NCBI GenBank assembly: GCA_001655205.1
Contig: LPNZ01007209.1
Location: 1-34,136, forward strand
Direction: 5' to 3'
Length of the DNA: 34,136 nt
DNA from: Lenisia limosa
Taxonomy: Eukaryota > Protista > Breviatea
Shown here: piece after piece, positions 3,501 to 34,136 of the stretch
How positions within the stretch are numbered: the stretch's first letter is position 1
Layout of the letters: each line of letters opens with the position of its first letter
Notes under the pieces: model-generated
Databases searched by the model: none
Told to the model about the DNA's origin: nothing
What the model saw: only the letters and a program-made list of their open reading frames with translations
Position numbers and translations under genes: made by a program

Positions 3501-3759
3501 CTACCCGAAAGTGAGCCACAAACCAGTTTGACTGCGTTGACGGCACGCGTGTATTCGCGCTCTCTCTGGAAGTGGTGGGCATTGGGGTCGTAGTTATGAA
3601 CTGTTCGGTTCATTTCGTGACGATTGCGTCCCACATAATCTTGCTGAAAGGATGAGCATAAATGTCCTTCCAATGGGACCAAATAAGCCTTCTTAGAGTG
3701 GACATGGAAACCAAACCCCAAGCGCCAACCTCATTTCTTGAAAGCGCTTTGACCTTCAT
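548..3759 (-). CDS. DCAF13: DDB1- and CUL4-associated factor 13 / Sof1 (WD40 protein of the U3 snoRNP/SSU processome), 17 exons, about 452 aa
   Basis: Manual splicing with all GT-AG introns gives one open frame. Exons: 3759-3730, 3643-3524, 3335-3218, 3128-3101, 2965-2873, 2731-2659, 2589-2555, 2265-2191, 2066-1907, 1834-1781, 1686-1601, 1494-1419, 1369-1299, 1265-1181, 1074-986, 786-700, 626-548 (sum 1359 nt, ends TAG). Family motifs: MKVKALSRNE, NYDPNAHHFQREREYTRAVNAVKLERLFAKPF, LDGHTD, WNPMEPFYFTAANED, MDVSYSPTGQEFCSASYDKTIRIF, SREVYHTRRMQRV, SGSDDTNIRIWKADASQKLG, and the Sof1 C-terminal HRHVPK. Confidence 0.96.
891..970. repeat. Tandem duplication, 2 x 40 bp, inside DCAF13 intron 15
   Basis: CCAAAGCTGTCGTGTCATTATCAATCCGCTAGTCACTACA / CCAAAGCTGCCGTGTCATTATCAATCCGTTAGTCATTGCA. 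Confidence 0.9.
1576..1621. repeat. Direct repeat of 15 bp (period 31) across a DCAF13 donor site
   Basis: CCTTGATGGTCCTTG at 1576-1590 (intron) and 1607-1621 (exon, encodes KDHQ on the minus strand). Confidence 0.8.
2422..2520 (-). other. Intronic hairpin-forming element, copy 1 (DCAF13 intron 7, 2554-2266)
   Basis: Minus strand GCTGTGTGCACAGAGTTGTAAGGC...TGAATTAATA...AATATCTCTTATAAGCGTGATGGTGTGGACGGCTTCAACCAGAT; 23/24 identical to 21906-21929 in the left arm plus an identical 18-mer AATATCTCTTATAAGCGT in the right arm. Confidence 0.8.
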
Positions 3760-4210
3760 GGTGATCAGATCTTAGGCCGATATCAATTAAACGAGCCTTC
3801 AACTGAGGCGCTTTACCTCTATTGTTCTAAAGCAGATAGTAGCAGTTGAGAAAGGGAGCTTGGGTAAATATATGGAGGTGATCACACGGGGGAGAGTCAG
3901 TCTTCGAAGATGAAACTGGTAACAATAAGTGTAAAACTAGCTTCTGTAGTCACTGTAGAGGGTTATTAATGGTGAAAAGGCCTTGTTGATTTCTTTTGTG
4001 GAGTAAAGACAAAGTCTGGTTGCCTTCCGGTCGCATAAGCCCCAAAACCAAAAATTTCAAAGTGCGAATGAAAGTTATAACTAACTCATTGAACATATTA
4101 TTAAGACTTATATATATATACGACAATGGAATAAGCATCATTTACTATGAAGCCGCATAAAAGCTGATCCCATCAACCTAGCTGCCACGCACCCCTCCCC
4201 ACTGCGGATT
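3760..4210. promoter_or_regulatory. Putative bidirectional promoter/5' UTR region between divergent DCAF13 and giant surface-protein genes
   Basis: Only 451 bp separate the two inferred, divergently oriented ATGs; includes a (TA)n run near 4108-4120. No specific elements proven. Confidence 0.45.
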
Positions 4211-4286
4211 ATGTCAATAGCTTGTAGTATAAGGTTATGGCAGGGATTGGCATTGGCCCTGTTTCTTCTATCTGCATGGGCTAATG
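4211..4286 (+). other. First exon encoding a predicted N-terminal signal peptide
   Basis: MSIACSIRLWQGLALALFLLSAWAN-G: basic residue, hydrophobic core, small-residue A-W-A cleavage motif; phase-1 donor GTATGA at 4287. Confidence 0.7.
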
Positions 4287-7200
4287 GTATGATTCATTCT
4301 TCGTAGCGTTCTCTATTTTCCACTATGTTTCTTTTTATGGATTATCTATCTCAAGCTTGGGAAAGTTATGGCCATTTTATTTGGGGGAATTAATAATTAA
4401 AGGAAGACAAAACACAACGCAACCCAGCAAACATTTACTAATCATAGCGTTGGGGGAGTATGCAAACACACTGTACGTGGTGGTGGTCACGACATGCATC
4501 CTTACAGAACTGTGTAGGGTCGGGACCCGAGTGACGTAAAACATCACGTTGTCCTCTACTTGGTGTTCGCAGAGAACCCAGTAGTGGACACAGGTGACGT
4601 CCATGTTCGCGAGGCTAAGAGTTTTTGCCCGTTGAGTGGGCTCATATGCCATGGCTGGTCTTTCATGTCGCTGGCAATGGACGATTCAGTTATTCTCAGG
4701 CCAGAGAGTGGACATCACAACTATTAGTGATTTATTTTGCTTGTGAATGTGTTTGTCTCTAAATGAACCCGTTTCTGTTCCAAGACATTCTCTCTCCATA
4801 TTTTGCCTTCAACATCACACCCTTCAGCCACGCCGCAGTGCTTCATGTTCACAAGCGTGTTCGTCGACCCCCTTCCTAATGCCTTGCCAGAGTCCCATAG
4901 AATCTTCTCAGCTGTCAGGTTGGTCTAGCTAATGCTTAGAATATGGAGGGATAGAATTGGTCCTACGGCAAAAGGTTACTTTCACTGTCTTTCGTGTTTC
5001 TCTTTCTTTTTCTTTTTCTTAGGTGTTTAATCTTGGTCTAATCCCGTTTGGAATCGATTTCCTTTTCATAGTCTTACCCCCCTGGTATCCTTTTCATAGT
5101 CTTGCCCCAGGTACCCAGGAACACTCGAGATGTTTTATCAGTATGGAATGCCCAAAGTCCAAGGTCCCAATACAGGTTTTGGGGCACTGTTTGGAACTGG
5201 TGGAGAGCCTTGCGTCGAACCCTCGCTGATACCCTTACTCCATTAGGACTGGAAGAATCTGACCACATTGGAATGGTGATTGTGACTGTTGGTGACGATT
5301 CCAGTTACCTGGTTGTGATCGGTGAGTGGTTGTGATCGATGAGTGGTTGGGATCGATTCCAAGTGAGGGGAATGGATTTTTGTTGTTTGGAACACACGCA
5401 GTGGATAGTGATATGTACCAAGGTGAGATGACCGAAGGGCCACACTTTGGAGAAAGGTGGTATTTTGATTCATTCTGCCGTGAAGCAAGATTTCGGTAAA
5501 CTCCCCACCCCCAGGTGACGATGATGACAGGACCAGTGGTGATTTTGCCGTTCGATTGTCCAGCTCGGGTTTTGGAACAATCCCTCTTGCCTTACGTAAG
5601 GGGTATATCATTTCTATAAATAATTATTTTTGACAGGTCTACTTATAAGCAGCATGTAACTCATATTATAGATATAGTATGTGTATAGTATATACATGTA
5701 TATATATATGATATAGTATAAACATTGAGTTTTAATGTTTGTGCCAAGTCTACTCACGACTATTGAGTATACAGTATCTTATGATGCGCAAAGAACACAA
5801 GACATTTTAACAATCCACAGAAGATGACCCGGGTGACACATGTCCAGGGCTCACAGTCAATCATGACTGTTACAACACCACTGATGACTCAATGTACGTG
5901 GCTCTGGGAAGGAAAGCTAATCCTAGAAAGACTCAATGTCATCATTTTTTCTCAAAATGCAAGCACGAGTGAAGAATTAATTAGGATACCAAGAACTTTT
6001 TATCATTTTAAAACCTGGAGTTTTTTTCTGTTCAAACTTTTTTAGATCGAGACGGACCCGCGTATTGACGTTATAGACTGGCCTTTTGGCACTTTGCCCC
6101 GTGCTGCGTATTGACGTTTTAGACTGGCCTTTTGGCACTTTGCCCCGTGCTGCGGAGACGGCATGGCTATTGGGCCGCTTCCGGACCTGGACCTAGATCT
6201 CTCAGTCGAATTCTTCAACGTCTTTGATATGGACGCAGTATGGGGGGCCTTGGGGTGTTGGTGGATAAGGGTTGTTGGTGGATAAGGGTTGTGTTGGTAG
6301 TGGGATTACATGATTCTCGCGTCTGTAGTTTTAACTTTCATTCATTAATTCCATCAGGTGAACTTTTTTGGCAGTTTCGAGTCCGACCTCTACACCATCA
6401 TCAAAGCTGCCGAATTTAGACTAAGTAACTTCGAGATTGACGGATCTGGTGGGGGGTAGAGAGGAAGTAAAGAGGACAGAAGTAGTAACATAATATGGGG
6501 CTGTGAAAGGAAATATAAGAAACCAAGGGCCTGGTCTCAAAATAAGATTTTCCGCTATTTGCTTTGTATTTTAGATTTGAATAAGGAAGACAAACAGCTC
6601 ATTGCCTCAGACCAAGTCAGGAATATGTCAATCAAAGCCATGTCATGTGGTGCTGCATGTGCCTCTCTGACCACCTGTTCCGAATGTGCCACGTCACCAC
6701 TTTGCGGGTGGTNNNNNNNNNNNNNNNNNNNNNNNNNNNNNNNNNNNNNNNNNNNNNNNNNNNNNNNNNNNNNNNNNNNNNNNNNNNNNNNNNNNNNNNN
6801 NNNNNNNNNNNNNGGCATTAATGACCTCTCAGGAAGCGGGGAGTGTTTGTACGGAATAGAATCCGGGCCACTTATTGGAGAGTGCTTCTCAACTAATTAC
6901 TTCTACGATGATTGTAAGAAGGAACCTTACTCACAACTATCATGTCTCTTCGCTCCAATAAATACAGATAAAGAGCGCAATTGAACGAGAAATCTGCTTT
7001 TGTTGAGCCTAAGGGAAGCCCTTGGGTATGCCCTTTATTTCCTTTAGGTAGCGATCACTGTTCCCGTTATGGTAATTCCTCCTCGTGTGTGGTAGACATG
7101 TCATGCGGTATTTGCGAAGACATCAACTGCGTCCCAATTGCTTTGGACCAGGTGAGTGCATGGGGAAATGGCAGTAACGTTGTATTGAGTTCATGAAATT

Positions 7201-10200
7201 CATCATTTAGTTCGGGAACGACATTGAAAGAGTTAAACAGAACTGCGGAAAATGGGACTCCTTTTACCATACCACTGGTGAGTATAATACCTGTTTTTTA
7301 ATTTCAGCAGATCAACAGATCTTGTTTCTTTCTATTTCTTTCTTTCTTTATTTTACAGTGTCCTCGCACTTGTTTTGTTGTAGTGTTTAATTTAACCCTT
7401 CCAGTCCCAGCCAAGCCAAGAGAACTCTTTATTTCTGTTCCGCAAGCAGAGAGTCACAACGTGCGTGGATATGTGTACCATTCGCTGATACCAAATTTAT
7501 GTTATTTAATACGTTTCATTGGGTAGAGAGGAAGTGATTTTTTAATTTTACTCATTTATTAACTCACAATAATATTTGTGTCGTATTGAGGAGATGAATT
7601 GATACTTTCACCATGGTCTGACATGTTGATCCTTGTCAGCGTTTTCTGTGTTTCCAAGTTCTCCTCCTAATTCCGCATAGTACACAATTGAAATGATTTG
7701 CTCGGACCCGGACGGATCGCCAGAGTATGCCCCCATCATATGGTCCACAAACGTCCAAACAATAGAGCCAGGTGTGTCACTGTCAACGCTCTCCAATGTC
7801 AGCAATTATGCACTTCTCCAAGTACCAGGCAACGTCATTTCTGGACTAGTCGTCTCTTTCCTGTCCACTTGCCAGGACCTTGCCCCCCACAGCGAGCTGG
7901 TTTCTATTTTCATTGAGGCGGATCCACCAACACTCTCGCCGCTAAACTCAACAGCTTCTGTCACTGCTGGAGACTTGCCTCATTTGATAACTCTAGACGT
8001 TATCACACACAACATTTTGGCGCCACATGCTCTCACGCACACCATTACGTCTCTCCCAGATACAGGAATGTTGTTTCATCATCTTCATGGTGGAGCCGTG
8101 GGTTCTCAGATCGGCTCTGTTCCCGCAGTTTTATCAGACAACACGGTCTTCTTCGTTCCTCCTGCGGCACTAGAACCCGGTGTGCACCCGGTGGTATTCT
8201 CATTTGAAGTGGCGTCCCACTCCCAATCCGTGACATCATCGATAACTGTCGAAATTAGCTCGAATAACCTTCGGCCCAATGTAATGCCAGATCTTCAGAT
8301 CGACGCTTCACGCAACTCCCCAGTTCAGTTCAGTTTCGTCAGCCAAGGTGACCCGAACAATGATTCACTGCAGTTCACCGTTTCATCACTTCCTTCAAAC
8401 GGAAGGCTATTCCAAGTCTACGGGAATATGTCAACTGGGGTGGAAATTACAGCACCCGGCTCCATCTCCAATCCAACTCATCTTTTGGAGTATTTAGCCA
8501 ACAACACTTCCTTATTTGGAAAGGTTTTTGATTCTCTGACCATTTCCGCTTCCGATAATTCACTTGTAACCGACTTCCAAGTGACGTTTTCGCTCGCCAG
8601 ACCCGAGCCGATCTTGGAAACGTCGGATATCACCGTTAGCTCTGACCAGCCTATCCGGATAAATCTCCGAGAAGGCCTGGCTACTGACGTGGCAGGCCCA
8701 GTGAAATACTCAATTCTGTCTCTTCCATCATCTGGTTCTCTCCACACATGCATGCAAAATGGACATGCTCTGGCCGCGCTATCCGATCCCGACATGCCAG
8801 CCGACCTTGACCTGGACTGTATTGTGTTTATTCCTGGGGTGGACGGGTTCACGGGTTCAGTTTCAGTCTCCGCAGGTTGGTCCGGTGACGGTACATTTGG
8901 ACCCACGAACTCGACTTTCAACATTTATTTCAATGGAAGCCCCCGGGAGGTGCCCGGTTGGAGAGTTCTGTACACGCTTGTCAACACCACCGCCAGCGTA
9001 AGTCTGCCGGCCGAACTGCATTCAGACGGACAGTTACGGGTTTTGTCGCTGACCGGGGATTCTGCTGAATTTTCAATTGGCAATGTAACCATCTCTACAG
9101 CTGACTTATTGACAGTACCTTTGGATCTCAACGTGACATGTTGTCTTCCCTTCGAAGAGAATTACGAAGCCAATCAGTTGGTTTTTGAGCTGACCTCTGT
9201 GTCATCCCCATCTACGAGGCATTATGTTGACGTTATATGCCACAACGGAACCCTTGTTGTCACCCCAGCAACAGTGTCTTCTACAGATTTCAGCATCCCA
9301 TCAGGCATTATCTCATGCCTCGACATTGCTGTGGATGGAATTGGACCAGTGGCTGTGTCGGTCACCAATATGTCTGGCGGTATTTTACGCACGCCTACTG
9401 GGGTCACTATCGACATTGGCGATTCGGTCACCCAGGGTGTGTCCGCCGCCGCACTGCCGCAGATCTGCGTCTATCCTGATGAGGCTATTTTGGGCCCAAG
9501 TCGTCAGGTCAATATCACCATCACTCCGATATCCCAGGGTACCTCAGGAGCGCCGGTTGCGCTTGAAATCTCCATTGGCTCTCCTGTGACACCCATCCCG
9601 AACCGGATTAGTGTTCAAGGAGAGCCGTGTGCTTGTCACCCCTTTTCACTCAAATCCTCTCGCTATGATGACGTGGCATATTTCGAAATTACGAGTTTCC
9701 CCAGTGAGGGTTCGATTTGGTTTATGACTGGAGACACGGCCACTTCCGAAATTACGAGTGTTCCGGCGGCGGTTGCGAAGTCGGACTCCCTTTGTTTTGA
9801 CATTCCGTGTTTGTCTGAAGGCTGGCCTCTTGATTCTTTCGCATTCTCAGCCACAGATGGTGTTACAACGTCACCCCCAGAATCGATTTTAGTATTTTCG
9901 GCAGTAGTCTCCGACCGGCCTCCCGAGTGTTCCGCTTCTTCAACCTCCGTAACCTCGACGGTCGGTTCCGTATTCTTCACACCGGGGCTCTGTCTAGACG
10001 CGGATGGAGATAATGTAAATATCACAATCACTTCCCTACCTTCAAATGGTTCGTTATTCCTGTACCCCGAGGAAACCCTCCTGGACATTGGGGACAGCTT
10101 CCTCCAAGACTCCCTCCTCCTCTTCCGAGCCACACCATCCGCATTCACGCTAAGCGATTCGTTCACATGGAGGGGCACAAGCAATGCCTTTGAGAGCGCC

Positions 10201-13200
10201 AGCCAGACCACAGAGATCAGCATGACATGGTCTCGGGCCGGGGGCTGTGACCACCAAGTTATCGCGGCGGCTGAGGGGGCTGACACTGATGTTCCCCTCT
10301 CCTGGACATCTTCTGTGTTCACCCCAGATTCAGTCAGGTTTGTTATTGTTTTAATGTTGATTTTTCACTCACACATTTTTTTTTGGATCTGAGGGTTATC
10401 TTTTCACAATCACCCAGGTGAGCAAGCAAAATGTGGCTATAATTACAATGAATGGTATTCGCTTATAACTACTAGTATATATGATATAATACCTGCTTTT
10501 TGTTACAGCAGGACCTGACTACTATAGGGTTGCCTCTCTCCCCTATCAGACCCGTTTATACATTGGCGGTGTCCGGCTATGGGAAGGGAGCGTGTTTTCT
10601 CCTGCGGCTGTGCCCCAAGTGCGGTTCACAGATGTTTATGAAAACACAAATGGCCCGCTGATCTTGATGTTTGACCCCCAATTTAACGGTACTGTGGATC
10701 GAAAGGGCGGCCTATTTGACACACTTTCAACTTCTATTCTCATTTCCACACGGCTTGGTGACTCTTTCAGATCCTTCGATCGTCCCCGAGCCGTGCACAG
10801 TCTTACTTCTTGTTACCGCCAATAATACGGCCCCGGTAGCCAAGCCTCTGCGATATTGGCAACCCGAAGATTGCATAGTGGATATTGAACTGGAAGGTGC
10901 GGCATCTAATTAACATGTTACGTTAAACTCTTTGCTGCGCTTGCTTGGCTTGTGATGATCCGTTTTGCATCTCTTTTGTAGTAACACCCCCACCCCCACA
11001 GGTTATGATCTTGATACACGATTTGCAGAACTGCAGTTCCGGATATCTACAGCTCCAACTAATGGGGTTTTGATGGTATGAGTGGCCTCAACTAATGGGG
11101 GTTTGATTGTATGAGTGGCCTCAATTGACCCCTTTTACTTGGATGGGCATGATGCACTGTTGATTGTTATCGAGCTAAAAAGAGTTTAAACCCTTTTCTG
11201 TTTCTTTGATGGAATGCGGTGCTGAAGAAGCGACTGGGCTTTGTTTGTTTTGTTGTTAACCCGTGTGTTGTCAGNNNNNNNNNNNNNNNNNNNNNNNNNN
11301 NNNNNNNNNNNNNNNNNNNNNNNNNNNNNNNNNNNNNNNNNNNNNNNNNNNNNNNNNNNNNNNNNNNNNNNNNNNNNNNNNNNNNNNNNNNNNNNNNNNN
11401 NNNNNNNNNNNNNNNNNNNACAAACAGCCGGCTGGGAGTGCAATGATTTGGAGAACTGTCTTGGTGGGTGGCATGCCATATCCGTGGGATAAGTCTTTGC
11501 CTCTTTGTTAACACTGTGACTCCTTTTATTCCACTGGTTATTGAGGTTTTGCAACTGATAATGTGTTGTTAGTTCAAAAACATTGATTTTGAAACATGTT
11601 GTGTGTCGTGTATGAAAGTTTAAGAGATGGATTACTTTATTTCTCTGTTGAAACCTATCACTTCCTTTCTTATTCGACTATGATAGTGTAAGGATATTGA
11701 GATCGGTATATTGAAAGCCAGGATTGCAGTGTCAGGAGGACAACCATGTTGGACGATTGTGTATAGGGTTAAAACCCATAACACCTACCCTTAATGGAGC
11801 CCTATTGTGTATTGATTGAAGAAACATATGTATATAGAGCCTAGTTTAGGAGAATAACCTGGGATGAGGAGGGTGGGCTCAAAAATATTTCAAAAGAGGA
11901 ATTGTTATTTGTTGTATCTCAGATGAACTGAAATAGTCTCTTAACATATTTACGATATTACAATTGTGCGATTATTGTAATCTGTTGTTGCTATCATTGT
12001 TTACATCCCTCTTACCTGAAATAAAACTATCATTAAACACACTGCTGCATTTAAGACTATTTTCATTTGATTACACAGGAACCCGAGGCCCTTCTGTAAC
12101 CTATATCCCGGACCCTGACGTATTTGGCAGCCCCGCTGACTCCTTCTTGGTAAGTCTTCAGGGACAATTCGACGATTAAAGCTCATAGAGTTATGCTAAA
12201 TCCATTAGTATATGATATAATATATGATATGTACTACATATTTTATATCATTGGTACGTGTAAGTTGTATGATGTACCACTATGTGAGGTATGTCATGTG
12301 GCATAGACAGCCACACATGAGATGTACACTGACACGATTCAGTACGACATATTTGACGGGACAACTTGGTCCGAAGCCGAACTCGTAACCATCAAACTAA
12401 CATCGCGAAATGACGCTCCATCTGCTGCGGCGGCAAATTATACCATGAACGAGGTTGAGGAGCGTCACGAATATTAATAATCAAAGAGGCTTTTATTCAA
12501 TTCTTACCACCCAGGACATCACTCAAGAATTCACGCTCAATGTGTGGGACCTTGACTCGGCTGAAGTCATCGTCGAGGTTCTTTCTCTCCCCCTTGGCAC
12601 CCTACAAACCCGGGATGCCAGCGACCAGAACTGGATTTCCGTTGGCTCAGTGCCGTTCGCGTTGCCAAATGATCATAACAAGGTGGGGTGGAGATGCACC
12701 GAAGTGAAGCCTTGTGCCTTAAAGCAGGGTTGTAATTCAGAAAGTTGGAGAAAATTGAACGAAAATCCGAGCCAATTTCTTGAATTACCACCCTGCTTTA
12801 AGACCTGAACCCCTCCTTAGCTGCAATAAAATCTGACTCTTCACGTTTCAGATGCGCTTCCAACCGGTTCCGTTCCAATCGTCCGAACCACCTGGCTCAG
12901 TTTATACGTCCTTTCAATTCTCAGGTGAGCATTAGTGCTGATGATAGTTCAAGACCTCTAGGATCATCTCACCGCCTCCACAGCTTCGGATGGTTCAGCT
13001 TCAAGCCCTATCCAGACTATATCCTTTGTTGTGATCGGAGTGAACAACAGCCCTGTTCTGACTGGAGGAAGTCTGAGCATCCTTGAAGACACTGAAACAG
13101 TTTTCTGCTTCGGCCTGAGTGATGTGGATGATGACACTGCCAGCCTGAACCTGACTGTGTCACAGCTGCCAAACCACTGTGACGTTTGCAATGTTGCTAG

Positions 13201-22200: not shown

Positions 22201-25200
22201 TTCGAATATTCACATTATTTTAAAGAAGTTTAGAACGGCTTTTACACAAACACCTTTGTAGTTTTCCTTTTTGAAGAAAGCCTGTTCATACCCCCCCCCC
22301 CAATTACAGGTGGACAGTGACCTTGTCAACGTCAAAAACATCACTACAGTACCACATAACGTAACAACCCACCTTGGACTTTTGCGATACTCTCCTGAAG
22401 CCCATCAGCACGGTGTTGTTGGCAGCTTCCAGTTCCGGTTCGTGAGGATTTCCTTTTTTCGGACATTCACATGTAGTAAATATATTATAATAGCTACCTA
22501 ATTTAAGGACAGTATTTGAATCCACTGCTTTTCTCATGTGTGTTTTTTGCAATCGTTTATCAGAACAACCTCTGCTTTTAGCATTACTTTTCCCACTCGA
22601 CAGGGTGTACGACGATGAGTTTTTGGATACCACCAATTCAACGTTCACTGTGGGTGACGGATCTGATTTGTAACATTCTGACATTTATTAGTTAAAGAAG
22701 TTGGCTATTTATAACTTAATTATGGGTATCATTGTGTTTTTAGAGCACTGAGCTTACCCTTTTCTCATCTAATACAACTTCAGATTGTTTTGAGGAGTAG
22801 GAATGACCAGCCATCCGCCTTCGATGCTGTTGTTACCACTTTTGAAGATACTGAAATTTCGGTTTGTGTCCGGTCTTGTTTTGTCCTTTTAAGTTTTCTT
22901 TTCGATGGAATGTTGTCGTATCATGGCATTATCAAGAAGACATGTGTGTTTCGTCCTTGAAGACTTTTACCCTGCAGTTCCATCTCAATGGTACCGATCC
23001 TGATGAGCTGACGGATGATGACTTTGTTGCTTTGAGGGTTCTTGTGGTTACACCGCCAACTTCGGGCAAGCTTTATGTTGGGGGGACATCATATTTACAA
23101 AACCTGAGAAACTGCTTACTTCAAACTCCTTAATTCAACATCTTTCATGATATTAGAGCGCCTCGGTGGGCGTACAGGTGACCACCCCTGACGTCCTCCT
23201 TCCGGACGACTTCCTCAAATGGGTACCGGATCCCAACGACTATGGCCCTTCAGCTGCCACGTTCACTTATAAGGTCTATGACGGCAAAGCGTACAGCGTT
23301 CTCCATGTCGTTACCTTGGACGTTTTACCCGTTAACGACGCGGCTGTTTTGGACTTCCCTACATCGGTTGACGCTCTTGAAGATGTCCCTGTTGCCATTT
23401 TTAACTCTTCCTCGCTTTCATTCATTGTGGATCATGATGATGAAGGTAACAATCTTCAGATGGACATTTCTGTCTCCTCTGGAGTATTAAATGCTCCTCC
23501 ATCCGCCCTTGTTATCTCGGGTACCGGCACTTCGATTCTCAATGTGACTGGAACTGCAGCCGACACGAGCGTCTGGCTAAAATCATTGACCTATGTCGCG
23601 GAGCCTGATTTCAACGGACCAATAGGAATGGACATCACTATCACCGATTCTTTCACCGGGCCAAATACAAAAATTATCCGGGTCCATGTGAGGGGCATGT
23701 ATTTATTATTATTCAGAAAGTGTCATATTTTCACTTATTTGTATATTTATTTCCCTGTGTTTGCTGCTTGTTGAAGCAAAGTGAACACTTACCTCCCCAG
23801 GTAACAATAAACGTCATCGCCGTCAACGACGCTCCTCTCATCTCCGGACCCGCGTCATACAGCCTAGTGGAGGACACGGAGAAGAAAGTGCCAGCAGGAG
23901 GATGGACAGTTACGGATGTTGATGCCGGGTCTGGTTTGGTCAAAACCTGTGTTCAGTCTGACAACGCAAAAATAAAGGTTGGGGAGTGGTAATGCACAGC
24001 ATGCACGATTCATATTGCCCCAATCAGGGTTAAACTTGGTGGATTTTTTTTTTCATTTACTTCCCGCGTTGACGATTCAGCTGTTGTCATCAGGCCTACC
24101 ATCTTCATTTACAAACCCTACGGGAAGCAACACTCAATATTTCTGCTTCAAATCCACGTTAGGGATGTCTGATCTTTGATATTTGAAACAGGAAAATAGC
24201 AATTGAGCACTATTTGTGTACTATGTGCTGCTGTTGAACCCTTCTGAACCACTGTGTACAACTTGATTTACAAAACCACTTGGACATTTACTTTTCAGGA
24301 TTTTGGATGTGGCTACCTTCCTCAACTCTAGAAAGCTTAAACTGAAGGGGGATGCACATTTCAGCGGACAACTAGTTGTGCAATATTCTGTTTCTGACGA
24401 GGGGAATACGGGAGGACCCGCATTATCAGGTTACTACGTAAGTCACATGAGATTTGTGTGTTTATACGTGCTGTTATATCTTCAACGAAATCACAATGTA
24501 CACTGCAATCACCTTGCAGAATATGACAAATACGGTGGACCCTGTGATTGACGGACCAACCGTCTCGGTAGGAGACAAGTATACTAGAAATGTCTCCCAC
24601 TTTGCTCAGATATTTTTATCTTTTAGTTTTTGGATGTGACGGGAAGCGAGGACTCTGTTACCCCCCTTCACCTTGCTGTGTCCCTCATTGATCCTTCAGA
24701 AGAGCTTCTCCCAATTCTGGTAGGCGGAATGTGGCCTGGGATGGTGAAGGAAATAGTCAAATTGAAAGCACAAAGGCCATTGTGCCTCTAGCACAGCCTT
24801 GGTGGGACTAAACCTGCTTCCTTGAATAATAACACGGTGTTGTCCGGGATAGTCCTGTGCTTTCTGGGCTTTGGTCGCTCATTCATTACAGTGCATCCAT
24901 CCTCACATTTTCAGATATCAGGCTTTGAGACCGGATCGGTTGTAGAGAATGCTACCCAAGTCAATGCTACCACCTGGACTGTGAGGGGACTCGAATACCA
25001 ATTTGAAATTGAACTTGCAAAAACTGTCTTAATACGTCTTCTTTCACCTTATCTTTTCTCCAACAATACGCCTTTACGATATAGACACTGAACTCCTCCC
25101 TGGCTTTGACGCCACCACTTCATTGGTCCGGTGTTATGAACCTGGTCGTTGACGTCACGACAAAAGAAACAGACAACACCATTCTCACCGTAACTAAATT

Positions 25201-28200
25201 GTTTGTTGGATGTTCTCTCACTAAATTGTTTGTTGGATGCGATATCTGGTTATTGGGGGGTCACACTTCTCTTGGGCTTTGCCATTTATCCCAAAAAATT
25301 ATATTCTATGCACATTATACATTTGTATTTAATGTAGTATACCATATGATATATAGACTTCAAGTGCATCGTATAGTATACTATAGTTCTTCAAACCAAA
25401 TAAATTGGTCCTGGATTCCTTACTTTCCCCAGGTGTACAGTGAACATCACTCCTGTCCCCACGCTTCCGACGTTCACTGCATTCACTGCCCACTACTCTG
25501 GATGGGAAGACACTTCAGTACCTCTGAACATTGATGGAGTTTTACAAGGTTGTTTTATTGTTGTTTCTCCATTTGCACTGATCTTGATGAAAGGGTGCTA
25601 ACTCTGTAGATTTGGATGGATCTGAGATCCTTTTCGCTGTGTTCCATGGAGTCAGGGGAAGTTTATCCAGGTTGGTGGTTCTGAAGCTTGGAATTAACCA
25701 GTCATGCACTTCATTTCGCTGACGTTTCTTGTTTCTGACCTTGACTTGAATGTCTATTTGATCTTATTATTTAGCGGAGTCAATAGCGGTCCTTCAGAGT
25801 GGACTGTGCAATCTACAGATTTTGTCGGTCTTGCCTTGGACCCCATCCCGAACAGTGACGAACCGTTCAACGTCACGGTGTATCTCACTGCACAAGAAAC
25901 TGCCACTCTTGATACTATTGCGGTCAATCAGGCATTTTCTGTGGAGTTGCAGGCTGTTGCTGACCTTGCTACTGTTCAAAACGGCGAAATGAATGTGACC
26001 GAAGACAACCCTCTTGTACTGGTGGCACTTGCCGATATTGATCTCTCTGAAGTGGTGGTCATCAATGTGACGGGTGTGCCTGCTGGCGGCTGGCTGAATA
26101 TTGGCAACCTCACAGACCCTGCAACCGGCAAATGGGAAGTTACCCAAGCTCAGTTTATTGGGTCAGGTGTGAGTTCCCTGGTGTTCTGGCCGCCTTTGCA
26201 TTGGCATGGCAATTGCACTCTGCAAATCGGACCAGGTACGGTGGTGGAGCTGACCAATCAAGATAGTACACCCATTCCGGGCAACACCTTGGATGTGACT
26301 GTTCTTCCTATTCCTGACGCTCCTTTGTTGGAGGTCAACAGCTCGACAGCACTCGAGGACGCTACAGCTCAGATTGTGCTAGCTGGATCCTTAGTGGACC
26401 CTTCGGAGGCCATTTCTGACTATGTCATCACAGGGGTTCCTTTGGGGTGGTCGCTGGTTCCCGGCACGGAATCGCCACCAGGAACTTGGACAGTTCCTTT
26501 TGCTCCCGAAGTGACGGTGGGAGTAACTGCTATCCCCCACCAAAGTGGTGTTTTTTCTCTTTCCGTTTCGCTCACTTCTTCTGAACAGTCAACTTCCGAC
26601 TCGGCAACCACTGCTGTTGCCCCGGTCGTTTCGTTTACAGCGGTGGCGGATGCAGCTACTCTTGCGCACCCCGCTGTCATATCTACGTACGAAAATGGCA
26701 ACGTCACGTTTGATATTGCGTGCACGAGTGTTGATTCAGACGGATCCGAGGTCGTTACCCTTTCTATCATTGGACTTCCTGGCAGCTCAACATCATCAAG
26801 TGGTGCTATCAGCGGGACTGTTTTGCTGTTCGACAGCAGCGCATCTTCAGTGAACATAACAGGGGTGAGCATCTTCCTGCCGCCGTACTGGTCTGGCAAT
26901 GTGTCTCTTGGAACAGTATGCTGGACCGAAGAAGGCAATGGAGACAGAAAGCAGTCCAATGACACCATGCTGCTTTCGGTTCATTCCGTGCCAACAATGC
27001 CATCAATGGTGCTGACCAATAGCCCACTTGGCAACGAGGATTCTGCGATTGCAGTGACGCTCGATATCGATTTAGTGGATACTGATGGAAGTGAGACTCT
27101 TAGTACACTGAGACTATCTGAACTTCATCCTAACGCCACAGTGTCCCCTGGAACCCGAGTATCATCAACATCTTGGACCTTGTCTGGACCAAGCGAGTGG
27201 TCTAGTTTTGCCGTCACCCCGCCGAGCTTCGACTCTACGGACTTCAGCTTTATTGCAATGATTGATGCGATCGAAAGTGACACTCTTGACTCGATCTCGA
27301 GAGCCATTTCTATCCCCATTTCAGTCACAGCCGTTGCCAACCCTCCGTTTGTCGGACTTGTCTCCGCCGGTTCCGGTCCTGAAGACACGGCTATTACGGC
27401 GATAGTTGACGTGGCTCTGGTTGACTTTGACTCTTCTGAAACCCTGTCTGTTCAAATCCACAGCCTACCTACAGGCTCATCTGTTCAGAACTGTGTCCCT
27501 CTGAGCTCGACCAGTTGCGCATTCAACACGACATTTCTTCCAAACATTGTCTTCACCCCCGCCCTTCACGATGACACGGACATTACCCTGGTCTTGGAAG
27601 CGATCGCCACCGAACAGTCCAATAATGACGAGGCGTCCTCAATGCTCAATGTTTCTTTCGAAGTCATTGCTGTCACGGACCCCATTATATTCCACAGTGT
27701 CAGCATTATCTCAAGGGAAAACGATGACGTTGTCCTTCCTATCGCTCTTGTTGACCCTGACTTGAGTGAGCATCTTTATCTCAATATCAGCCTTCCTCCA
27801 GACTTCGTTTTGCTTCCCGGTTCTCTTATCAGCGGCTCCTGGATTGCAGTTGTCACGGATGGTTCCGACGTCGTCATTCGGCCCCCATTATATGCCAGCG
27901 GAGTGTTCTTCGTCAATGTCACGGCTTACTCGCAGGAACAAGCTGATAGCGCTCTTCGCCTCGACGCTCCCTTCACAACGATCACGCTTACTATTCGCGC
28001 CGGCGCAACCCCTCCACAAACTTCCATCCACCATGCCATGGGTTTGCCTAATAAGGTAATTGCCTTATCTGTCAACTGTAGTCTCACTGACCCTGGAGAA
28101 ATCCTTCTCCCTGTTCATATCACGGGGCTCCCTCCTCCATTTTTACTGTCCTCTGGAGTTTATGACACAGCCAATGACACTTGGGTTGTCCCTTTGGCTG

Positions 28201-31200
28201 AAATGCACAATTTAACTGTATCTCACCCTGGTCCATCAGCAGCCGTCAACATCACCTTGATGGGCTACTCTTTTGACCCGCGGAGTAACACCACTGCAAA
28301 CTCCACCGCGATTGCCTCGGTTCAGATCATTGATCTGCCTGCCACACTCCCTCCTGTCACCAAGTACATAGCCTCGGTTTCTGTCAGAACCCTGGAAGAC
28401 ACCATTGTTGCGCTTGGTGTTCTAAGTAATCTAAGTCTTGCTGAAGTGTCTCCACTTCTCAGTGCAAGGCTCTACAATGTTTACGGAACTCTCACGTGTG
28501 GCTCCCTGGTAATTCCCAGGGTTTGGGAAGTCTTGTGGAGTGATTTAGCCTCTTGCCTAATCCTGCCACTGCCATTTGTTTCGCAGACGACTCAGATCTC
28601 GGCAGTTTTCTTCGTCAATGAAGCACCGCATCTCGGCGTTTACGTCCGTCTCCTGAACTTCTCCGTCGAAGCCGTTGCCAACACTCCACTGTTGGAGGTT
28701 CCTATGGAACCTGTTGTTTTAGACCAAGAGATCCACACTCCTCTCAGTATTAACAGTAGCCTGGTTGATCTTGACGGATCTGAAGAACTTTCTTTGACCA
28801 TCAGTTCGGTACCAGCATGTCTGTCATTCAATCTCGGAGCCCCACATAACACTACTTGGGTCATTGCACATCTCGAAGTAGGCAAACTGTCAAATTTGAC
28901 TGTTTACGCTCTGCCTCAGTGTGACGGGGCCCATGTAGTTGAAATGTCAGCAGAATCGATGGAGGTTTCAAATAATGACACATCAAGCATTTTTGCTAAC
29001 TTTACCCTTCACGTTCTTCCGCAGTCTGACGGAGCAGATATTACGATATTAGACTTCTTGACAGACGAGGATTCAAGCGTCAATCTTGACTGGATTGCTG
29101 TTCCGGTCGATTCGGATGAGTCCCTTGAGCCTGTTGCCCTTGTTTCAGGGCTGCCCGGTACACTGTCACCTGCCAATGAAGTCGGTTCTGGGGCCTTCGA
29201 AATCGACGAAAGCAATTGGTCGTCAGTGTCCTTCACCCCCACGCACAACATCTACGGCAACTTTTCTGTCAGCATTTCTATCCGCTCTGTCTCTGCGGGA
29301 TTGTTGGCATACCCAGTTCCGGCGCCTCTTATGACAACCACGTCATTTCAGATTGTCATTAATCAAGTTGATGATCTTCCTGAAGGCACACTCACAACAT
29401 CGGAAGACATTTGCCAAGTCGGCCTACTTTGTTCAGGCTTTTCCCTACATATATCCGAAGCAATTGGTCCCATAAACGTAACGGTTTCGTCAGCGGATGC
29501 TTTAATTATTCTAGATCCTTCCACACCCTCAGTCATTGATTTGGCATTAACAGAAATATCGTCAAATGGCGCTACTGTCCTCCTTTCTGGTGGTGTATTG
29601 GAAGTGATGTCGGCAGTTCAGTTCATTCGAGTTTTGAGAGAAGTTCCTTCGGAAGCCTTATCCCATTACCCCCAAGCAATGGTGGTGTTTAGCATTACGG
29701 ATTTCGGGCTCAATGAACCCCTAGAATTTATTAAATCATTGACGGGAGTGAAAAAATTCAACCAGCCACCCCAGGCCCTTGGATTAGTGCTAGAGATGAC
29801 CGAAGAGACCTCACAGACTTTTTCGGTGGCTGAAATTGCCGTCAACCCTGAGAATGATGGCATGATACTGAAAGAGGTGCATTGTTTACCCTCCTATTTC
29901 TGCTCCACATCTGTTAACAATACGCATGTGACTGTCTCCCCCAAATTGGACATGTTTGGCTCTTCAGTGCTCCGTTGTTTAGTGGCAGACTCGTTCAATA
30001 ACACTGGTCCAATAGACGCTAATGTCACAATCGCTAACGTCAATGACCCCCCTGTGGTGATTGCACCCCCAGTTCTCGCATTTATTGAGGACGGGATTTC
30101 TGGAATTGGAGTTTGGAGCATTATTGACGTTGATAATGAAACTATTTCGGTAACTATCGAAACTACTTCCAGTGATAGAAGAAGGTCCATCCCACAACCC
30201 ACTATCATGGTACCCGGAGGAACCCCGGAAATAGAGTCATCCGCAGTGACGGTTGGCACAAATGCCACGTCAATTATCACATTAACTGGAAAGGCTGTCG
30301 ACATCACTAAATGCATGATGAACGTTCGAGTGACGCTACCTCCGCATTCGACTTCCACAATCGAAGTTCTTGTTTCTGCCGTTGACACAGAGTATCAAGT
30401 TCACTCGCCAGGAATAGTGACTAATATTACTGCTGTTGACGACGTGCTTGTCAGACAATGGCAAAGCGTTGAGTTTCAGATTTGGAGTGACCTCACGCGC
30501 ACTCTTACGCCAGCGCAACTTGGCGTGGTTGATGTGGATGGTGACTTGGACCTTTCTTCCGCTGCCGTAGTCCTGATTTCTGGATCTGACCAAATCTCAG
30601 CCGAACCCATGACGGGCGGTATTCGGTTCACTTCCGCTGGCAGCTGGGGAGGCTCGGAGATTGTCGGAAACTATTCTGTTTGTGACCTGAATCTGTCGTG
30701 CGTGGCTGTCAATATATCAATCGAAGTGAGGGGATTGTTCTTGTAGCTATATTACTGTGTACTATATGATATGTATAATCCTCAAATTCATCTTCTCAAG
30801 TTCAGCAGCGCATCTGTTTTGCATTGTTTCACTCTTGCAGCTCCTTGAAGCCCCCTGTCTGGTCCAAGCCGAAGCCAGCGACCCCACCAACCTCATCGCA
30901 ACCTGCAGTACAGGCGACCTGATTACGCTAGAGTTTTCCTCGGATTGCCTTCCTGCTGACCCCCATGAGTTCTTAAACTTCTCACACCCTGGTGGGAAGG
31001 GATGGCTGGAATAGAATTCAGTTAACATTGTAAAATACGGGGTTTTGCTGTTTGAAGATATAGCCGTCTATTTCATTTTACCATATCAAACCAATTCCCC
31101 AAACATTCATGGTCACATTGAATGATTAACTAGATATTAGCCTCAGTTGTGTCGTTTTTGACCATTGTAGTTGGAGATTATGATTACATTTGGAAGACGG

Positions 31201-34136
31201 CCAGGACTTTAGAACTCAGTATCACAATAGAAGACCCGTTGACACCTATTCTTGCCCCTAGTATCAAGGTCTCTGTTGCAAGCAATTCACTCCTTGTCAA
31301 CTCATCAGTAGTGGACAGAATAGGCAGTTTTACTGCTGTATCACTTTCCTTATTAGGCAATTGGGGGACATCCATACCCAAACTTCTTAAAGCGGAGGCA
31401 AGTGGTTCCTCTGACAACTCCATCATGAGCCCTGGAGACTCTGTCACTCTCTACTTTGACCAGGTAGGGTTCTTTCTTTTGGCATTTGTTGAATCATTTG
31501 TACAGTTACGTCGTTGCCTTTCAATGAAAACTAGGGTAACGCAGATCACCATATATATGGGTATTGAGGAGGCATGACATTTTTTTATTTCAAAAAACCG
31601 GTACTGACCACCCCAGGCTACGGAGCAATACCCGTCGGGCCTCACCTTGATCCCTTGGCTATCTTTCAATCCCCCAATTCAGTTGCTGACAAACATTACC
31701 TGGGAGTCCGCAGCAACTGCAAGGATGGCTTTACTTGCGAATAGCACCTGGATAGTCCCGGGACCTCTTGCCCTTCCGGACCCCTACATCCCGGCAGATC
31801 TTAAGATCTCGACACAAGGCCTGAATAACGCTGCTGGTAGGCTGTCAATATATATATTTGCCATAAATAGCTTAGTGTAAGTATTATGTACTACAAAGAG
31901 AACTATAAAATTATATCTCCCTATTACCCTATTAGGAAACGCCAATCTGACAGAAGTGAGCCAGCCACTTGCCTTATCTGGAAACTGGGGTAGAAAAGCA
32001 CCTGCCATTATTGAGACTGTCATCCTTACTGAGGACAAGACGAAGATCAAGATCACTTTTTCGGACGAATTCCCCCCCAATGGTGTGGATTTCTGGACTG
32101 TTTTCAAGGTCACCGGACCTGTTATATCCAATCCTGTGGTTCAGTGGTCCAATTCAATGACCATGCTTGTGACTAATCCCGACTCCTCCAAGCCTGTTGT
32201 TACGGGTCCTGAAACCGTCACGATTTGCCCTATGCCGCCTGAAGATCTCGTGGCCTACACGTGGCGTGAGGCCCAACAGTTACTCCGAACGGGTTTAACC
32301 GGCCTCGGCCCACCACTCAGCGGAAACTGCCTCTCCATCGAATCTGTTTCGTCCATCAAGGCATCCTCTGCTCTGATCACCATGATCCTGCCAGCCACTG
32401 GAGCCACCAGCGCCGCCGTGTTTGCGTTTGTCGTCTTTTTCCTTCGCAAACCAAAGCAGAAGAAGTCCAAGATCCTTCGTCTGCCTTTTGAACTTCCAAT
32501 CTATCTCAGTAAACCGTTCCAACCTCCTCCAATGGACACGTTTGACCCGGACCAATGGGCACGTGACCATGGCGACACGTACTCCGACATTGCTCCAAGC
32601 CAGGTACCGGAGCTGATTGGCCGGGCCGAAGTGTTAGGCGTGGAGACTGACACTCTTGAGGAAGAGCCGACAGACGATGATCCGAAAACAAAGGTTGCCA
32701 GAGTTTGTTTTAATCTTGGAATATTGTCTTTCAGAAGTGCCTATGTTTTAACATTATAAAACTGACTATTACGTACGCTGGGGTGATGGGATGCGGTGCT
32801 GCTACAGAAGCTGGGGATGATGGGATGTGGTTCTGCTACAGAAGCGACTGGCCTGGGCTCTGTTTGTTTTGTTGTTATTAACCCTCGTGCGTTATCAGCC
32901 AACAGAGTTATTCGTGCTTTTTGCTTCATAAATGTTCCAATTTTACTCACCCACACCAGGATCCCTATTCTGTTGGCCTCCCTGAAAGTGATGAGGACAC
33001 ACCACGAGGCCAAGACCAATACAACGCACTTGTTACCCCAGGTTTTATATATAGCGGCGAATCCAACAACGATGAGGATGAAGGAACCTCTGTTGATGAT
33101 CAAAAGACCACAGAATTCTCTGGAGCTGACAGTTTTGTGGAATCTTCATCTGACCCTTCACCAGCAACCCCCAGACCATTGCACACCGCGTCCGAAAATA
33201 GTGACAGCGTCTGTTTACTCCCTGGTATGCCAGCATCACACGATGAAAGCGCCCCAATTGCTCCTTTTTCGCCGCCGCAGCTGCAAAAGAGTGTTGTGCC
33301 TGACAAGGATGAAGAGGATCTTCCAATCTACTCGCTGAAGAACCTCACATCAAGCTCCACAGTCAGCGTTAGCAATGTGGAAATTGAAGCCCCTTCAAAC
33401 CCCCTCTCTCGCAACTCGTCGCTGCATTCCTTCGGCAGTCGATCGTCGCACAAGATCGGGCCCCTGGGAAGGCGAGCGTCGTTCTCGCATTCGGCGTCCT
33501 CCCCAATCACAACGCTTGACACACTCAATGCCGCTAATATGATGGTTTGTCACGATAGGCTCCACTGAACTAATGTCTACGTGATGTTCATAGTATCCGG
33601 GGAGTCATACATGTTGTTGACCTTTTAGCACTTTAAGGAGAAGCTTTCCTCCCTCGAGCTTCAAGGCAGCGCGTGGGACTCTGAAAAGGGTGGGTCGAAG
33701 AGCACCTTTTGCCCCGCTCCTAAAGCGGTCTTTTTTGTATCATGAGTATTTGACCCCCCCCCCCCAGNNNNNNNNNNNNNNNNNNNNNNNNNNNNNNNNN
33801 NNNNNNNNNNNNNNNNNNNNNNNNNNNNNNNNNNNNNNNNNNNNNNNNNNNNNNNNNNNNNNNNNNNNNNNNNNNNNNNNNNNNNNNNNNNNNNNAAGAC
33901 GAAGAAGGCGGATGTCTGTGAGTGTTTCTGAAGTTCCGACGTTCATGAAGGCTGCTAATGAGGCTGCATGTGAGGGGGACATTTGATCTGTGATCGTATC
34001 TTTGCTTCTTGAAACTCCCTTCAGTATAGCTATGTAACTATGTACTCACAGGTGCCGACGACAGGAACACGCTGAAGCCTTCTTCTAGCACCCCGGCCAC
34101 GCCACTATCCAAGTCCCCCGAAAGGCGGAGGGGCGG
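4211..34136 (+). CDS. Giant multi-exon single-pass surface protein (adhesin/receptor-like): signal peptide, PSI-like modules, tandem bacterial-type Ig/cadherin-like repeats, TM helix, long cytoplasmic tail; 3' end outside the window
   Basis: ATG 4211 begins MSIACSIRLWQGLALALFLLSAWAN followed by a GTATGA donor. Dozens of GT-AG exons carry recurring VNDAP/NDPP/EDT/DxDGD motifs. Long open exons at 7681-10332 and 25775-30725; TM at 32370-32444. The last visible exon (34052-34136) is still open. Junctions checked by hand stayed in frame and no internal stop/TM suggesting a gene break was seen, but not all were checked, the 4450-4830 exons are ambiguous, and four gaps interrupt it. Confidence 0.85.
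5060..5113. repeat. Tandem duplication (period 28) over a splice acceptor
   Basis: TCCTTTTCATAGTCTTACCCCCCTGGTA / TCCTTTTCATAGTCTTGCCCCAGGTA. Confidence 0.8.
5311..5358. repeat. Tandem triplication (period 17) over a splice donor
   Basis: GGTTGTGATCG|GTGAGT, GGTTGTGATCGATGAGT, GGTTGGGATCGATT. Confidence 0.85.
6061..6152. repeat. Tandem duplication, 2 x 46 bp, over a splice acceptor
   Basis: CGTATTGACGTT(A/T)TAGACTGGCCTTTTGGCACTTTGCCCCGTGCTG twice with one mismatch. Confidence 0.92.
6256..6289. repeat. Tandem duplication, 2 x 17 bp, intronic
   Basis: TGTTGGTGGATAAGGGT twice, 18 nt after the donor at 6238. Confidence 0.85.
6658..7151 (+). other. Two PSI-like (plexin/semaphorin/integrin) cysteine-rich modules
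   Basis: CASLTTCSECATSPLCGW[gap]...GECLYGIESGPLIGECFSTNYFYDDC and HCSRYGNSSSCVVDMSCGIC. The CxxxxxCxxCxxxxxCGWC pattern is typical of PSI repeats; partly interrupted by the N gap. Confidence 0.7.
6713..6813. other. Assembly gap (101 N)
   Basis: Run of N inside the PSI-coding region. Confidence 1.
7681..10332 (+). CDS. Intron-free 2,652-nt exon (884 aa) of divergent Ig-like repeats
   Basis: Acceptor catAG|TAC at 7680/7681 and donor TCA|GTCAGG at 10332/10333 splice in frame to neighbours; matches the 899-aa ORF. Repeating I/V-x-S-L-P-x-x-G-x-L motifs (TSLPDTGMLF, SSLPSNGRLF, LSLPSSGSLH, TSFPSEGSIW, TSLPSNGSLF). Confidence 0.85.
11056..11121. repeat. Tandem duplication, 2 x 33 bp, over a splice donor
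   Basis: CAACTAATGGGGTTTTGATG|GTATGAGTGGCCT / CAACTAATGGGGGTTTGATTGTATGAGTGGCCT. Confidence 0.9.
11208..11274 (+). repeat. Dispersed intronic repeat family B, copy 1
   Basis: GATGGAATGCGGTGCTGAAGAAGCGACTGGGCTTTGTTTGTTTTGTTGTTAACCCGTGTGTTGTCAG aligns with 32819-32898; abuts an N gap. Confidence 0.75.
11275..11420. other. Assembly gap (146 N)
   Basis: Run of N. Confidence 1.
14703..14765. repeat. Direct repeat of 26 bp (period 37) at an exon start
   Basis: GTTTCATCAGTCGTCGCCTTGTAGAA / GTTTCATCAGTCGTCGTCTTGTAGAA. Confidence 0.88.
16299..16393. other. Assembly gap (95 N) after a poly-C tract
   Basis: Run of N; probably hides an exon start. Confidence 1.
20835..20903. repeat. Tandem duplication (31 bp, period 38) over a splice acceptor
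   Basis: TCTTTAGGCAGTGTTTCAAATCAACGCCACC twice, identical. Confidence 0.9.
21906..21998 (+). other. Intronic hairpin-forming element, copy 2 (intron of the giant gene)
   Basis: GCTGTGTGCTCAGAGTTGTAAGGC...TGAATTAATA...AATATCTCTTATAAGCGTAATGTGGACAGCTTCGGCCAGAT; AAGCTGT/ACAGCTT and TTGTAAG/CTTATAA arms pair. Confidence 0.8.
25193..25239. repeat. Direct repeat of 20 bp (period 27) just after a donor
   Basis: ACTAAATTGTTTGTTGGATG at 25193-25212 and 25220-25239. Confidence 0.85.
25775..30725 (+). CDS. Intron-free 4,951-nt exon (about 1,650 aa) carrying about 9 RTX/T1SS-adhesin-like repeats plus a few VNDPP-type repeats
   Basis: Acceptor ttAG|C at 25774/25775 in phase 2 with the preceding DLDGSEIL exon; donor GAA|GTGAGG at 30725/30726; matches the 1680-aa ORF. 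Motifs DIDLSEV, DPSEAI, DSDGSEV, DTDGSETL, DFDSSETL, DPDLSEHL, DPGEIL, DLDGSEEL, DSDESL, with AVADxxxL/IPDAPLL/AVANxP linkers, W-containing turns and PPxxxG motifs. Confidence 0.88.
30841..32340 (+). other. Membrane-proximal repeated beta-rich domain (2-3 copies), unassigned
   Basis: APCLVQAEASDPTNLIATCSTGDLITLEFS, IPKLLKAEASGSSDNSIMSPGDSVTLYFDQ and a weaker APAIIETVILTEDKTKIKITFSD share a P-x-(L/I)-x-x-A...GD-x-(I/V)-x-L-x-F pattern. Confidence 0.5.
32370..32444 (+). other. Predicted transmembrane helix of the giant protein
   Basis: ALITMILPATGATSAAVFAFVVFFL immediately followed by RKPKQKKSK (positive-inside rule), consistent with type-I topology. Confidence 0.85.
32819..32898 (+). repeat. 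Dispersed intronic repeat family B, copy 2 (5' part itself tandemly duplicated, 32777-32843)
   Basis: GATGGGATGTGGTTCTGCTACAGAAGCGACTGGCCTGGGCTCTGTTTGTTTTGTTGTTATTAACCCTCGTGCGTTATCAG, inside intron 32694-32959. Confidence 0.75.
33768..33895. other. Assembly gap (128 N) directly after a poly-C acceptor (CCCCAG)
   Basis: Run of N; probably hides a cytoplasmic-tail exon. Confidence 1.

Follow-up and report, generated by a model that had tools for sequence, protein, structure and literature searches.

Organization of the giant gene

The window analysed here, a stretch of 34,136 nucleotides from Lenisia limosa (GenBank assembly GCA_001655205.1, contig LPNZ01007209.1), is occupied from 4211 to its end by plus-strand sequence that we read as one gene of a microbial eukaryote. 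The gene, which appears to continue for ~1.4 kb beyond the window, probably encodes a bead-built type-I membrane glycoprotein of ~6,000 residues or more. Its parts, including two main repeat types named VND and AVAD, are listed below.

4211–4286, plus strand: exon 1, with the start codon and signal peptide; phase-1 end at a GTATGA donor (4287)
4287–6610, plus strand: putative first intron of 2.3 kb, whose phase-1 donor fits the phase-1 acceptor at 6610/6611
6611–6913, plus strand: PSI module 1, with gap 1, a poly-G run, in the intron that divides it
7048–7151, plus strand: second Cys-rich, PSI-like module, a weak assignment from its cysteine pattern
7681–10335, plus strand: giant exon A, with ~8 degenerate cadherin-like repeats without calcium motifs
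10773–11078, plus strand: front half of the first VND repeat, in the last exons left of gap 2, read directly
11100–12078, no strand assigned: high-copy repeat DNA with gap 2, presumably intronic
12079–24437, plus strand: VND block of ~18–20 repeats, in exons of ~50–230 nt with GT-AG introns of 55–130 nt and a few longer ones; gap 3 lies inside
24520–29291, plus strand: AVAD block of 11 scored repeats plus one or two degenerate ones, the first two repeats split by six introns
25776–30725, plus strand: giant exon B, 4.95 kb and intronless, with most AVAD repeats and three to four cadherin-like/Big_9-like domains
30841–32369, plus strand: membrane-proximal region of ~370 residues, of no recognisable family
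32370–32471, plus strand: single transmembrane helix and basic stop-transfer segment, from a hydropathy scan
32472–34136, plus strand: cytoplasmic tail rich in Ser, Pro and Asp, holding gap 4; exons after 33565 are of low confidence

The repeats form one uninterrupted series of ~42–46 beads. When stop-free segments of both strands were scanned, a VND profile gave 38 matches and an AVAD profile 14, all on the plus strand and none on the minus strand, which is far beyond chance. From 7975 to 29927, the matches also run through the profile coordinates in ordered cycles, and this test is independent of the splicing model. These counts bear out an earlier note on this DNA, which had claimed dozens of ~100-residue VND and AVAD repeats and some 40–55 domains. 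At the DNA level, no repeats of 40 bases or more were found within the gene.

The plus strand contains two very long stop-free stretches (7681–10389 and 25698–30743), with many short ones between and after them. The frames that are intact within these stretches measure 2.65 kb (7681–10335) and 4.95 kb (25776–30725), which argues for selection. Direct reading of 10260–11280 revealed exons of ~70–230 nt separated by GT-AG introns of ~60–100 nt, and GC content is ~0.50 in the coding parts versus 0.40 in the predicted introns. The gene model was obtained with a home-made dynamic-programming exon chainer, which scored codons with log-odds from the two long exons and splice sites with iteratively trained matrices, and set a prior on intron length. 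Its output comprised 12 exons left of gap 2 (~1,180 residues) and 76 to the right (~4,720 residues), and ~80 GT-AG introns are predicted across the gene, six of them backed by profile alignment. The chainer wrongly spliced out the membrane helix; our main points rest on model-independent tests.

The proteins of the giant exons are also present in a metagenome assembly at ENA, on contigs NODE_709 (L001) and NODE_390 (L002). Both contigs are 100% identical to the window and free of N, and this independent assembly agrees with the window over 26 kb. NODE_390 reaches 4.2 kb beyond the window end, and the two contigs together filled three of the four assembly gaps (gaps 1, 3 and 4).

Seven exons (24520–25670 and the start of giant exon B) together code for the first two AVAD repeats. 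Once their six GT-AG introns were removed, both repeats aligned end to end with a mostly bacterial profile, at 62 and 70 bits, which provides independent evidence that the six introns are real and upholds the spliceosomal-intron gene proposed in the earlier note. In the VND block, introns recur at profile positions ~20–26, 55, 77 and 96, often in phase 0. This pattern suggests either that intron-bearing units were duplicated in a eukaryote or that introns repeatedly entered the same positions of the repeat. Giant exons A and B are intronless, as against ~8–9 introns per kb of coding sequence elsewhere in the gene. The repeat exons, the giant exons and the membrane-proximal exons have a GC content of 0.49–0.51, and the tail one of 0.55. 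A foreign composition of the giant exons was rejected, their GC and third-position GC being like those of the small exons, in a test that is biased because the codon model was trained on the giant exons. Given the host-like composition and the introns in the AVAD repeats just upstream, local intron loss seems likelier than a recent insertion.

Potential N-glycosylation sites (N-x-S/T) occur at 18–24 per 1000 residues in the giant exons, 2–2.6 times the shuffled expectation; in 154 bacterial relatives the density is 9.6 per 1000, about half that of the giant exons. The high density of these sequons fits passage through the eukaryotic secretory pathway. Collectively, these sequence features indicate that the gene is eukaryotic.

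Both ends of the predicted protein agree with the topology that the earlier note had proposed. A hydrophobic leader of 25 residues starts at the ATG at 4211, as expected for the Sec-type signal peptide. At the other end, a hydrophobic stretch (32370–32444) is followed by the basic run RKPKQKKSK; outside the leader, the only strongly hydrophobic 19-residue windows with a basic run after them lie here, in an uninterrupted frame (31881–32756). The long tail comprises at least 560 residues in the model (564 predicted), which runs to ~35.5 kb, past the window end. It contains four RRxS sites, and no NPxY motif was found in the 564 predicted residues, the last exons being uncertain. The PSI-like modules claimed earlier fared unequally. 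Module 1 (NODE_709 8929–9045) matched Pfam PSI (PF01437) at 23.1 bits, equal to the gathering score, over profile positions 2–26, and scored 20.4 bits against PSI_integrin, under the cut-off of 27. The second module (7050–7151) shows a cysteine pattern and had no Pfam match. For the membrane-proximal region, the pieces scanned gave no Pfam match and a length-limited search found no homologue; it may be a new membrane-proximal module. This region has a twofold internal pattern, in which each half ends in GNWG followed by a short beta-like segment.

Relationships of the VND and AVAD repeats

The repeats represent three subtypes of one superfamily, namely the VND type, the degenerate type of giant exon A and the AVAD type. 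A VND repeat spans ~100 residues, with an NDxP start, ED, a DxDxD-like loop and the motifs LPxxGxLY and YxPxxNxxGxDxFxY. Three single-exon VND pieces matched Pfam Cadherin_4 at 27.8, 35.2 and 26.3 bits (cut-off 25.1); VND pieces reached 23.2 bits against Big_9 (cut-off 23.6), and one VND exon piece scored 19.1 bits against Ig_SibA (cut-off 27). The classical Cadherin model (PF00028) matched none of the pieces scanned. In giant exon A, a profile made from the 11 downstream VND repeats only found five repeats, with E values of 2e-12 to 9e-6. This exon had no Pfam match and no homologue beyond itself in length-limited searches, whose blank outcome is weak evidence. A protein-atlas search with an unassigned 260-residue stretch of it (8836–9645) gave weak Ig-like leads below 0.9 only, and a model of 8236–9645 predicted without an alignment was unusable (predicted local distance difference test (pLDDT) score of 37).

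The AVAD repeat is ~113 residues long and is marked by AVADxPxL, ED, DxDGSE, W and PP motifs. With a profile built from 59 bacterial and three window rows, 11 tandem repeats in the predicted protein scored 27–78 bits, with one degenerate repeat between them. A full HMMER scan of 1.84 billion representatives, using 1,150 residues of the block as query, returned 1008 matches, 265 of them below 1e-30; those listed are mostly 1,000–7,600 residues long and ~30% identical. All ten relatives that could be named, among 20 looked up, are bacterial. They come from Pikeienuella ('tandem-95 repeat protein'), Halobacteriovorax, Paracraurococcus, Pacificispira and Thalassospira ('calcium-binding protein') and Magnetococcales, and include a 'Ca2+-binding RTX toxin-like protein'. 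Two top matches were scanned in Pfam; both join Cadherin_4/Cadherin_5/Big_9 repeats with AVAD stretches, and one of the two carries RTX nonapeptide repeats. The relative closest by identity lies in an ordinary bacterial gene neighbourhood from another sample. The sole solved structure found by the AVAD profile is PDB 9cse, a bacterial 'Large adhesion protein' (E 1e-12). Together with the Cadherin_4 scores above the cut-off, the named relatives and this structure support the description of the repeats as bacterial-adhesin-type.

Structure prediction points to the same class. An AlphaFold2 model of two AVAD repeats, computed with an alignment, comprises two beta-sandwiches (pLDDT 96). Against PDB, Foldseek returned generic Ig-like and cadherin matches including SiiE, with desmocollin EC2-5 on top; against the AlphaFold database, it returned a RapA2 cadherin-like protein, a tandem-95 protein and a T1SS (type I secretion system) agglutinin. 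Protein-atlas neighbours with recorded taxa were bacterial clusters with Cadherin_4/Big_9, except for one phage cluster, and one atlas cluster carries Ig_SibA and Cadherin_4 together. No Pfam or NCBIfam model matches the AVAD repeats of giant exon B (25941–29291), and the repeat appears to lack a curated family model. With ~1,000 proteins carrying it and 9cse related to it, it deserves one. In a length-limited search, the C-terminal part of giant exon B matched only itself or single cadherin-like repeats in bacterial proteins.

Mean identity among the AVAD repeats is 23.6%, versus 28% to the bacterial repeats. Likewise, for each AVAD repeat the best bacterial match (30–42%) exceeds the best sister repeat (25–33%). 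We conclude from these identities that the array is ancient and has drifted away from a state resembling the bacterial consensus. Judging from the sequences, an early bacterial source is probable for the AVAD repeats and perhaps for the whole repeat class.

Known systems, proposed role and competing explanations

The closest design is that of the Sib receptors of Dictyostelium discoideum. SibA–E are type-I, integrin-beta-like adhesion receptors with a VWA domain, a glycine-rich helix and a tail in which two NPxY motifs bind talin (PMC9197732). The type-I topology of leader, one helix and cytosolic tail recurs here, with the leader linked to the rest by deduction, as do a single helix rich in small residues and, broadly, Ig-like ectodomain repeats of the class that Pfam names Ig_SibA, Cadherin_4 or Big_9, Ig_SibA itself scoring under its cut-off here. 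In contrast, the giant protein bears a PSI head where Sib has VWA, and its predicted tail contains none of the NPxY motifs that are paired in Sib. No VWA match was found in the giant exons, the open segments of 4285–7193 or other pieces, the small exons not having been scanned as one spliced protein. Sib proteins are ~1,900 residues long, and the giant protein is about three times longer, with 11–13 AVAD repeats in addition. Cornillon and colleagues reportedly described the Sib repeats in 2006 as otherwise bacterial. The novelty seen in the earlier note was overstated, because a type-I receptor made of this Ig-like repeat class is already known in Sib (PMC9197732; Pfam Ig_SibA).

RTX adhesins (LapA, SiiE, MpIBP, FrhA and Aeromonas Lap) likewise consist of tens of tandem beta-sandwich extender repeats and have acidic calcium-type motifs at the bead junctions, and homologues of the AVAD and VND repeats occur in giant bacterial proteins, RTX-bearing ones among them. 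In such adhesins, calcium stiffens the repeats (PMC7493085, PMC4083281), which reach out from the cell (PMC7493085, PMC4083281, PMC5550230). However, the T1SS signal and the N-terminal retention module are absent here, and the giant exons and C-terminal pieces scanned gave no HemolysinCabind match that would indicate RTX nonapeptides. Export would instead proceed by the signal peptide and anchoring by the helix and cytosolic tail; the gene has ~80 predicted introns and twofold sequon density; and its neighbour, recognised by eye, is a eukaryotic SOF1-like gene, with no T1SS gene context. As both the RTX/T1SS end and a bacterial gene context are absent, the giant protein is not an RTX adhesin. 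The eukaryotic frame and the missing RTX/T1SS end accord with the chimeric protist protein of the earlier note, which may be an adhesin and may have obtained its repeats by transfer.

Classical cadherins of metazoans and choanoflagellates share the type-I topology, the tandem calcium-linked beta-sandwiches and the DxNDxP-like and DxD motifs. The likeness is at the level of the fold, at which the desmocollin ectodomain tops the Foldseek PDB matches, whereas bacterial-type models and not PF00028 match the repeats, and the catenin-binding tail is lacking. From integrin beta, only PSI and the membrane helix are found here; the beta-I (VWA-like) domain, EGF repeats and NPxY tail are absent.

We propose the following arrangement. 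The signal peptide would direct the protein into the secretory pathway. The ectodomain would then comprise, from the tip inward, one or two PSI modules, ~8 degenerate beads, ~20 VND repeats, 11–13 AVAD repeats and a few more, followed by the orphan membrane-proximal region, the anchoring helix and a long, presumably disordered tail with RRxS sites in the cytosol. If the acidic junction motifs act as in cadherins and RTX adhesins, they would bind calcium and stiffen the chain. At ~4 nm per bead, a fully extended, glycosylated rod could reach ~150–200 nm. Its far end, formed by the calcium-motif-free beads and PSI, would contact a substrate, prey, a partner cell or bacteria, and the tail may be phospho-regulated inside the cell. 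Such an adhesive function is suggested by comparison with proteins of similar build.

A single gene across 4211–34136 is well supported, not proven, and several points weigh against our reading. No ENA or Logan contig spans gap 2 (11275–11419), and the exon phases on its two sides fail to meet directly. The only RNA run of the study has no contig on 10700–16650 and next to none of the sampled words from 26000–30700 and 30700–33760. The gene model is rough at 16.1–18.6 kb and after 33565, and exon 1 is joined to the PSI exon by a phase match only. As to function, the tip beads have none of the calcium motifs, no domain for ligand binding could be recognised, and calcium binding, extension and adhesion are all deduced from motifs and from comparison with other proteins. 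The bacterial origin is similarly inferred. In a tree of the AVAD repeats (108 columns), branching is unresolved and the eukaryotic branches are long, so that the tree gives no donor.

Around gap 2, from ~11100 to 12090, the word depth is 800–2000, versus 33–38 on both sides, which identifies this DNA as a high-copy element, probably a dispersed repeat or mobile element within an intron. This high-copy DNA is why the scaffold gap stayed unbridged: NODE_709 covers 65 bases of the gap before it stops at a C run, and the Logan contigs, too, are interrupted there. In Logan, the DNA of 11100–12090 is scattered over many short contigs with variants. The last exon to the left (11003–11078), which closes in phase 0, encodes the front half of a VND repeat; the matching back part is encoded by the first exon to the right (12079–12150), which opens in phase 1. 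By this mismatch of phases, at least one small exon is unseen or one boundary is misread. It is therefore conceivable, if quite improbable, that scaffolding via the repeat joined two genes, a PSI/degenerate-repeat gene (to 11274) and a repeat/anchor gene (from ~12079), the more so as the two sides lie on different ENA contigs and RNA cover is lacking. Against two genes, both sides share the strand and have equal depth (37.7 left versus 33–35 right), the halves of the VND repeat match, the left part lacks its own stop, membrane anchor and tail, and the right part its own leader. Equal depth, common strand and matching repeat register thus favour continuity, short of proof. A bacterial adhesin gene mis-joined to eukaryotic DNA might be suspected, since bacterial contigs are numerous in the source metagenome and the repeats look bacterial. 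Yet both repeat types are cut by GT-AG introns whose removal restores the domains, the independent assembly has the same sequence over 26 kb, depth is even, the pieces scanned contain no RTX end, the C-terminus is a membrane helix with a tail, and sequon density is twice the bacterial level. Contamination or chimeric assembly is effectively refuted by that assembly, the intron-removal alignment and the one-strand repeat series.

For the origin of the repeats, the main competitor is an old, vertically inherited eukaryotic Ig/cadherin-like family that includes Sib, whose bacterial look would reflect slow evolution or reverse transfer. Strong divergence of the repeats without DNA-level similarity, host-like composition, the weak Ig_SibA match and the recurring intron positions, by which at least part of the expansion took place within a eukaryote, would all suit such a family. 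We nevertheless find it rather doubtful, since all named AVAD relatives are bacterial, as are the atlas neighbours with recorded taxa barring one phage cluster, the AVAD repeats are nearer to bacterial repeats than to their sisters, and Cadherin_4, a bacterial model, gives the VND repeats higher scores than Ig_SibA does. A different role is unlikely, with the protein serving chiefly as a surface coat or as a mechanosensing/signalling receptor and the glycosylated rod shaping the glycocalyx or transmitting force to the phospho-regulated tail. The dense N-glycosylation sites, the four RRxS sites without a talin-type NPxY and the lack of a recognised ligand-binding domain are compatible with this role. 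However, the characterised proteins so built (cadherins, Sib and RTX adhesins) all mediate attachment (PMC9197732, PMC5550230), and coat or sensing and adhesion roles are not exclusive. A bolder scenario, which we regard as a long shot, is that a bacterial RTX-type extender array, comprising the AVAD block and perhaps the Cadherin_4 block, was transferred into the protist lineage, became fused to a PSI head and an anchor, gained introns and sequons, and now holds prey or epibiotic bacteria. Protists of such anoxic enrichment cultures carry epibiotic partners, and if this scenario were true, the host would tether symbionts with a domesticated bacterial adhesin.

Under the single-gene, type-I reading that we prefer, bacterial-adhesin-type repeats would be seen at work inside an ordinary eukaryotic membrane-protein frame, and the gene would provide a dated and testable instance of domains passing between bacteria and eukaryotes. 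Along with the Sib receptors, it suggests that protists repeatedly build long adhesion receptors from this repeat class. Standard gene callers split the gene into dozens of pieces, and protist genomes therefore probably encode more such proteins than have been counted.

Assembly gaps and the neighbouring gene

The four gaps of the assembly lie as follows.

6713–6813: gap 1, really 93 bases including a G run of ~22, in the intron splitting PSI module 1
11275–11419: gap 2, unbridged by ENA or Logan contigs, within the high-copy DNA
16299–16393: gap 3, really 60 bases, opening with the final AG of an intron whose end is C-rich, after which a repeat end reads in frame
33768–33895: gap 4, really 46 bases, in the tail region

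All four begin at a G or C homopolymer of ~12–22 bases (edges 6712/6814, 11274, 16298 and 33767). At gaps 3 and 4, the C run forms the 3' part of an intron, with AG directly after it, and the trained acceptor matrix is also C-rich. A donor motif GTRRGGG was rejected as a signal, as it showed no strand excess.

Upstream of the giant gene lies one further gene.

~900–3771, minus strand: SOF1/DCAF13-like gene, intron-bearing, head-to-head with the giant gene

We take its exons, recognised by eye, to resemble SOF1/DCAF13, a nucleolar WD40 protein; the one exon piece scanned in Pfam gave no match. Its introns, like those of the giant gene, are of the GT-AG kind and measure 55–130 nt. The two genes are divergent, with starts ~440 bp apart, and this head-to-head arrangement fits 4211 being the true 5' end of the giant gene. 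Long open segments within the putative first intron (4287–6610) gave no Pfam domain. The same intron contains a tandem duplication of 46 nt at 6060–6151, perfect to 98%. Finally, a 46-nt inverted match (83%) connects an intron of the SOF1-like gene (2444–2489) with an intron of the giant gene (21934–21979).

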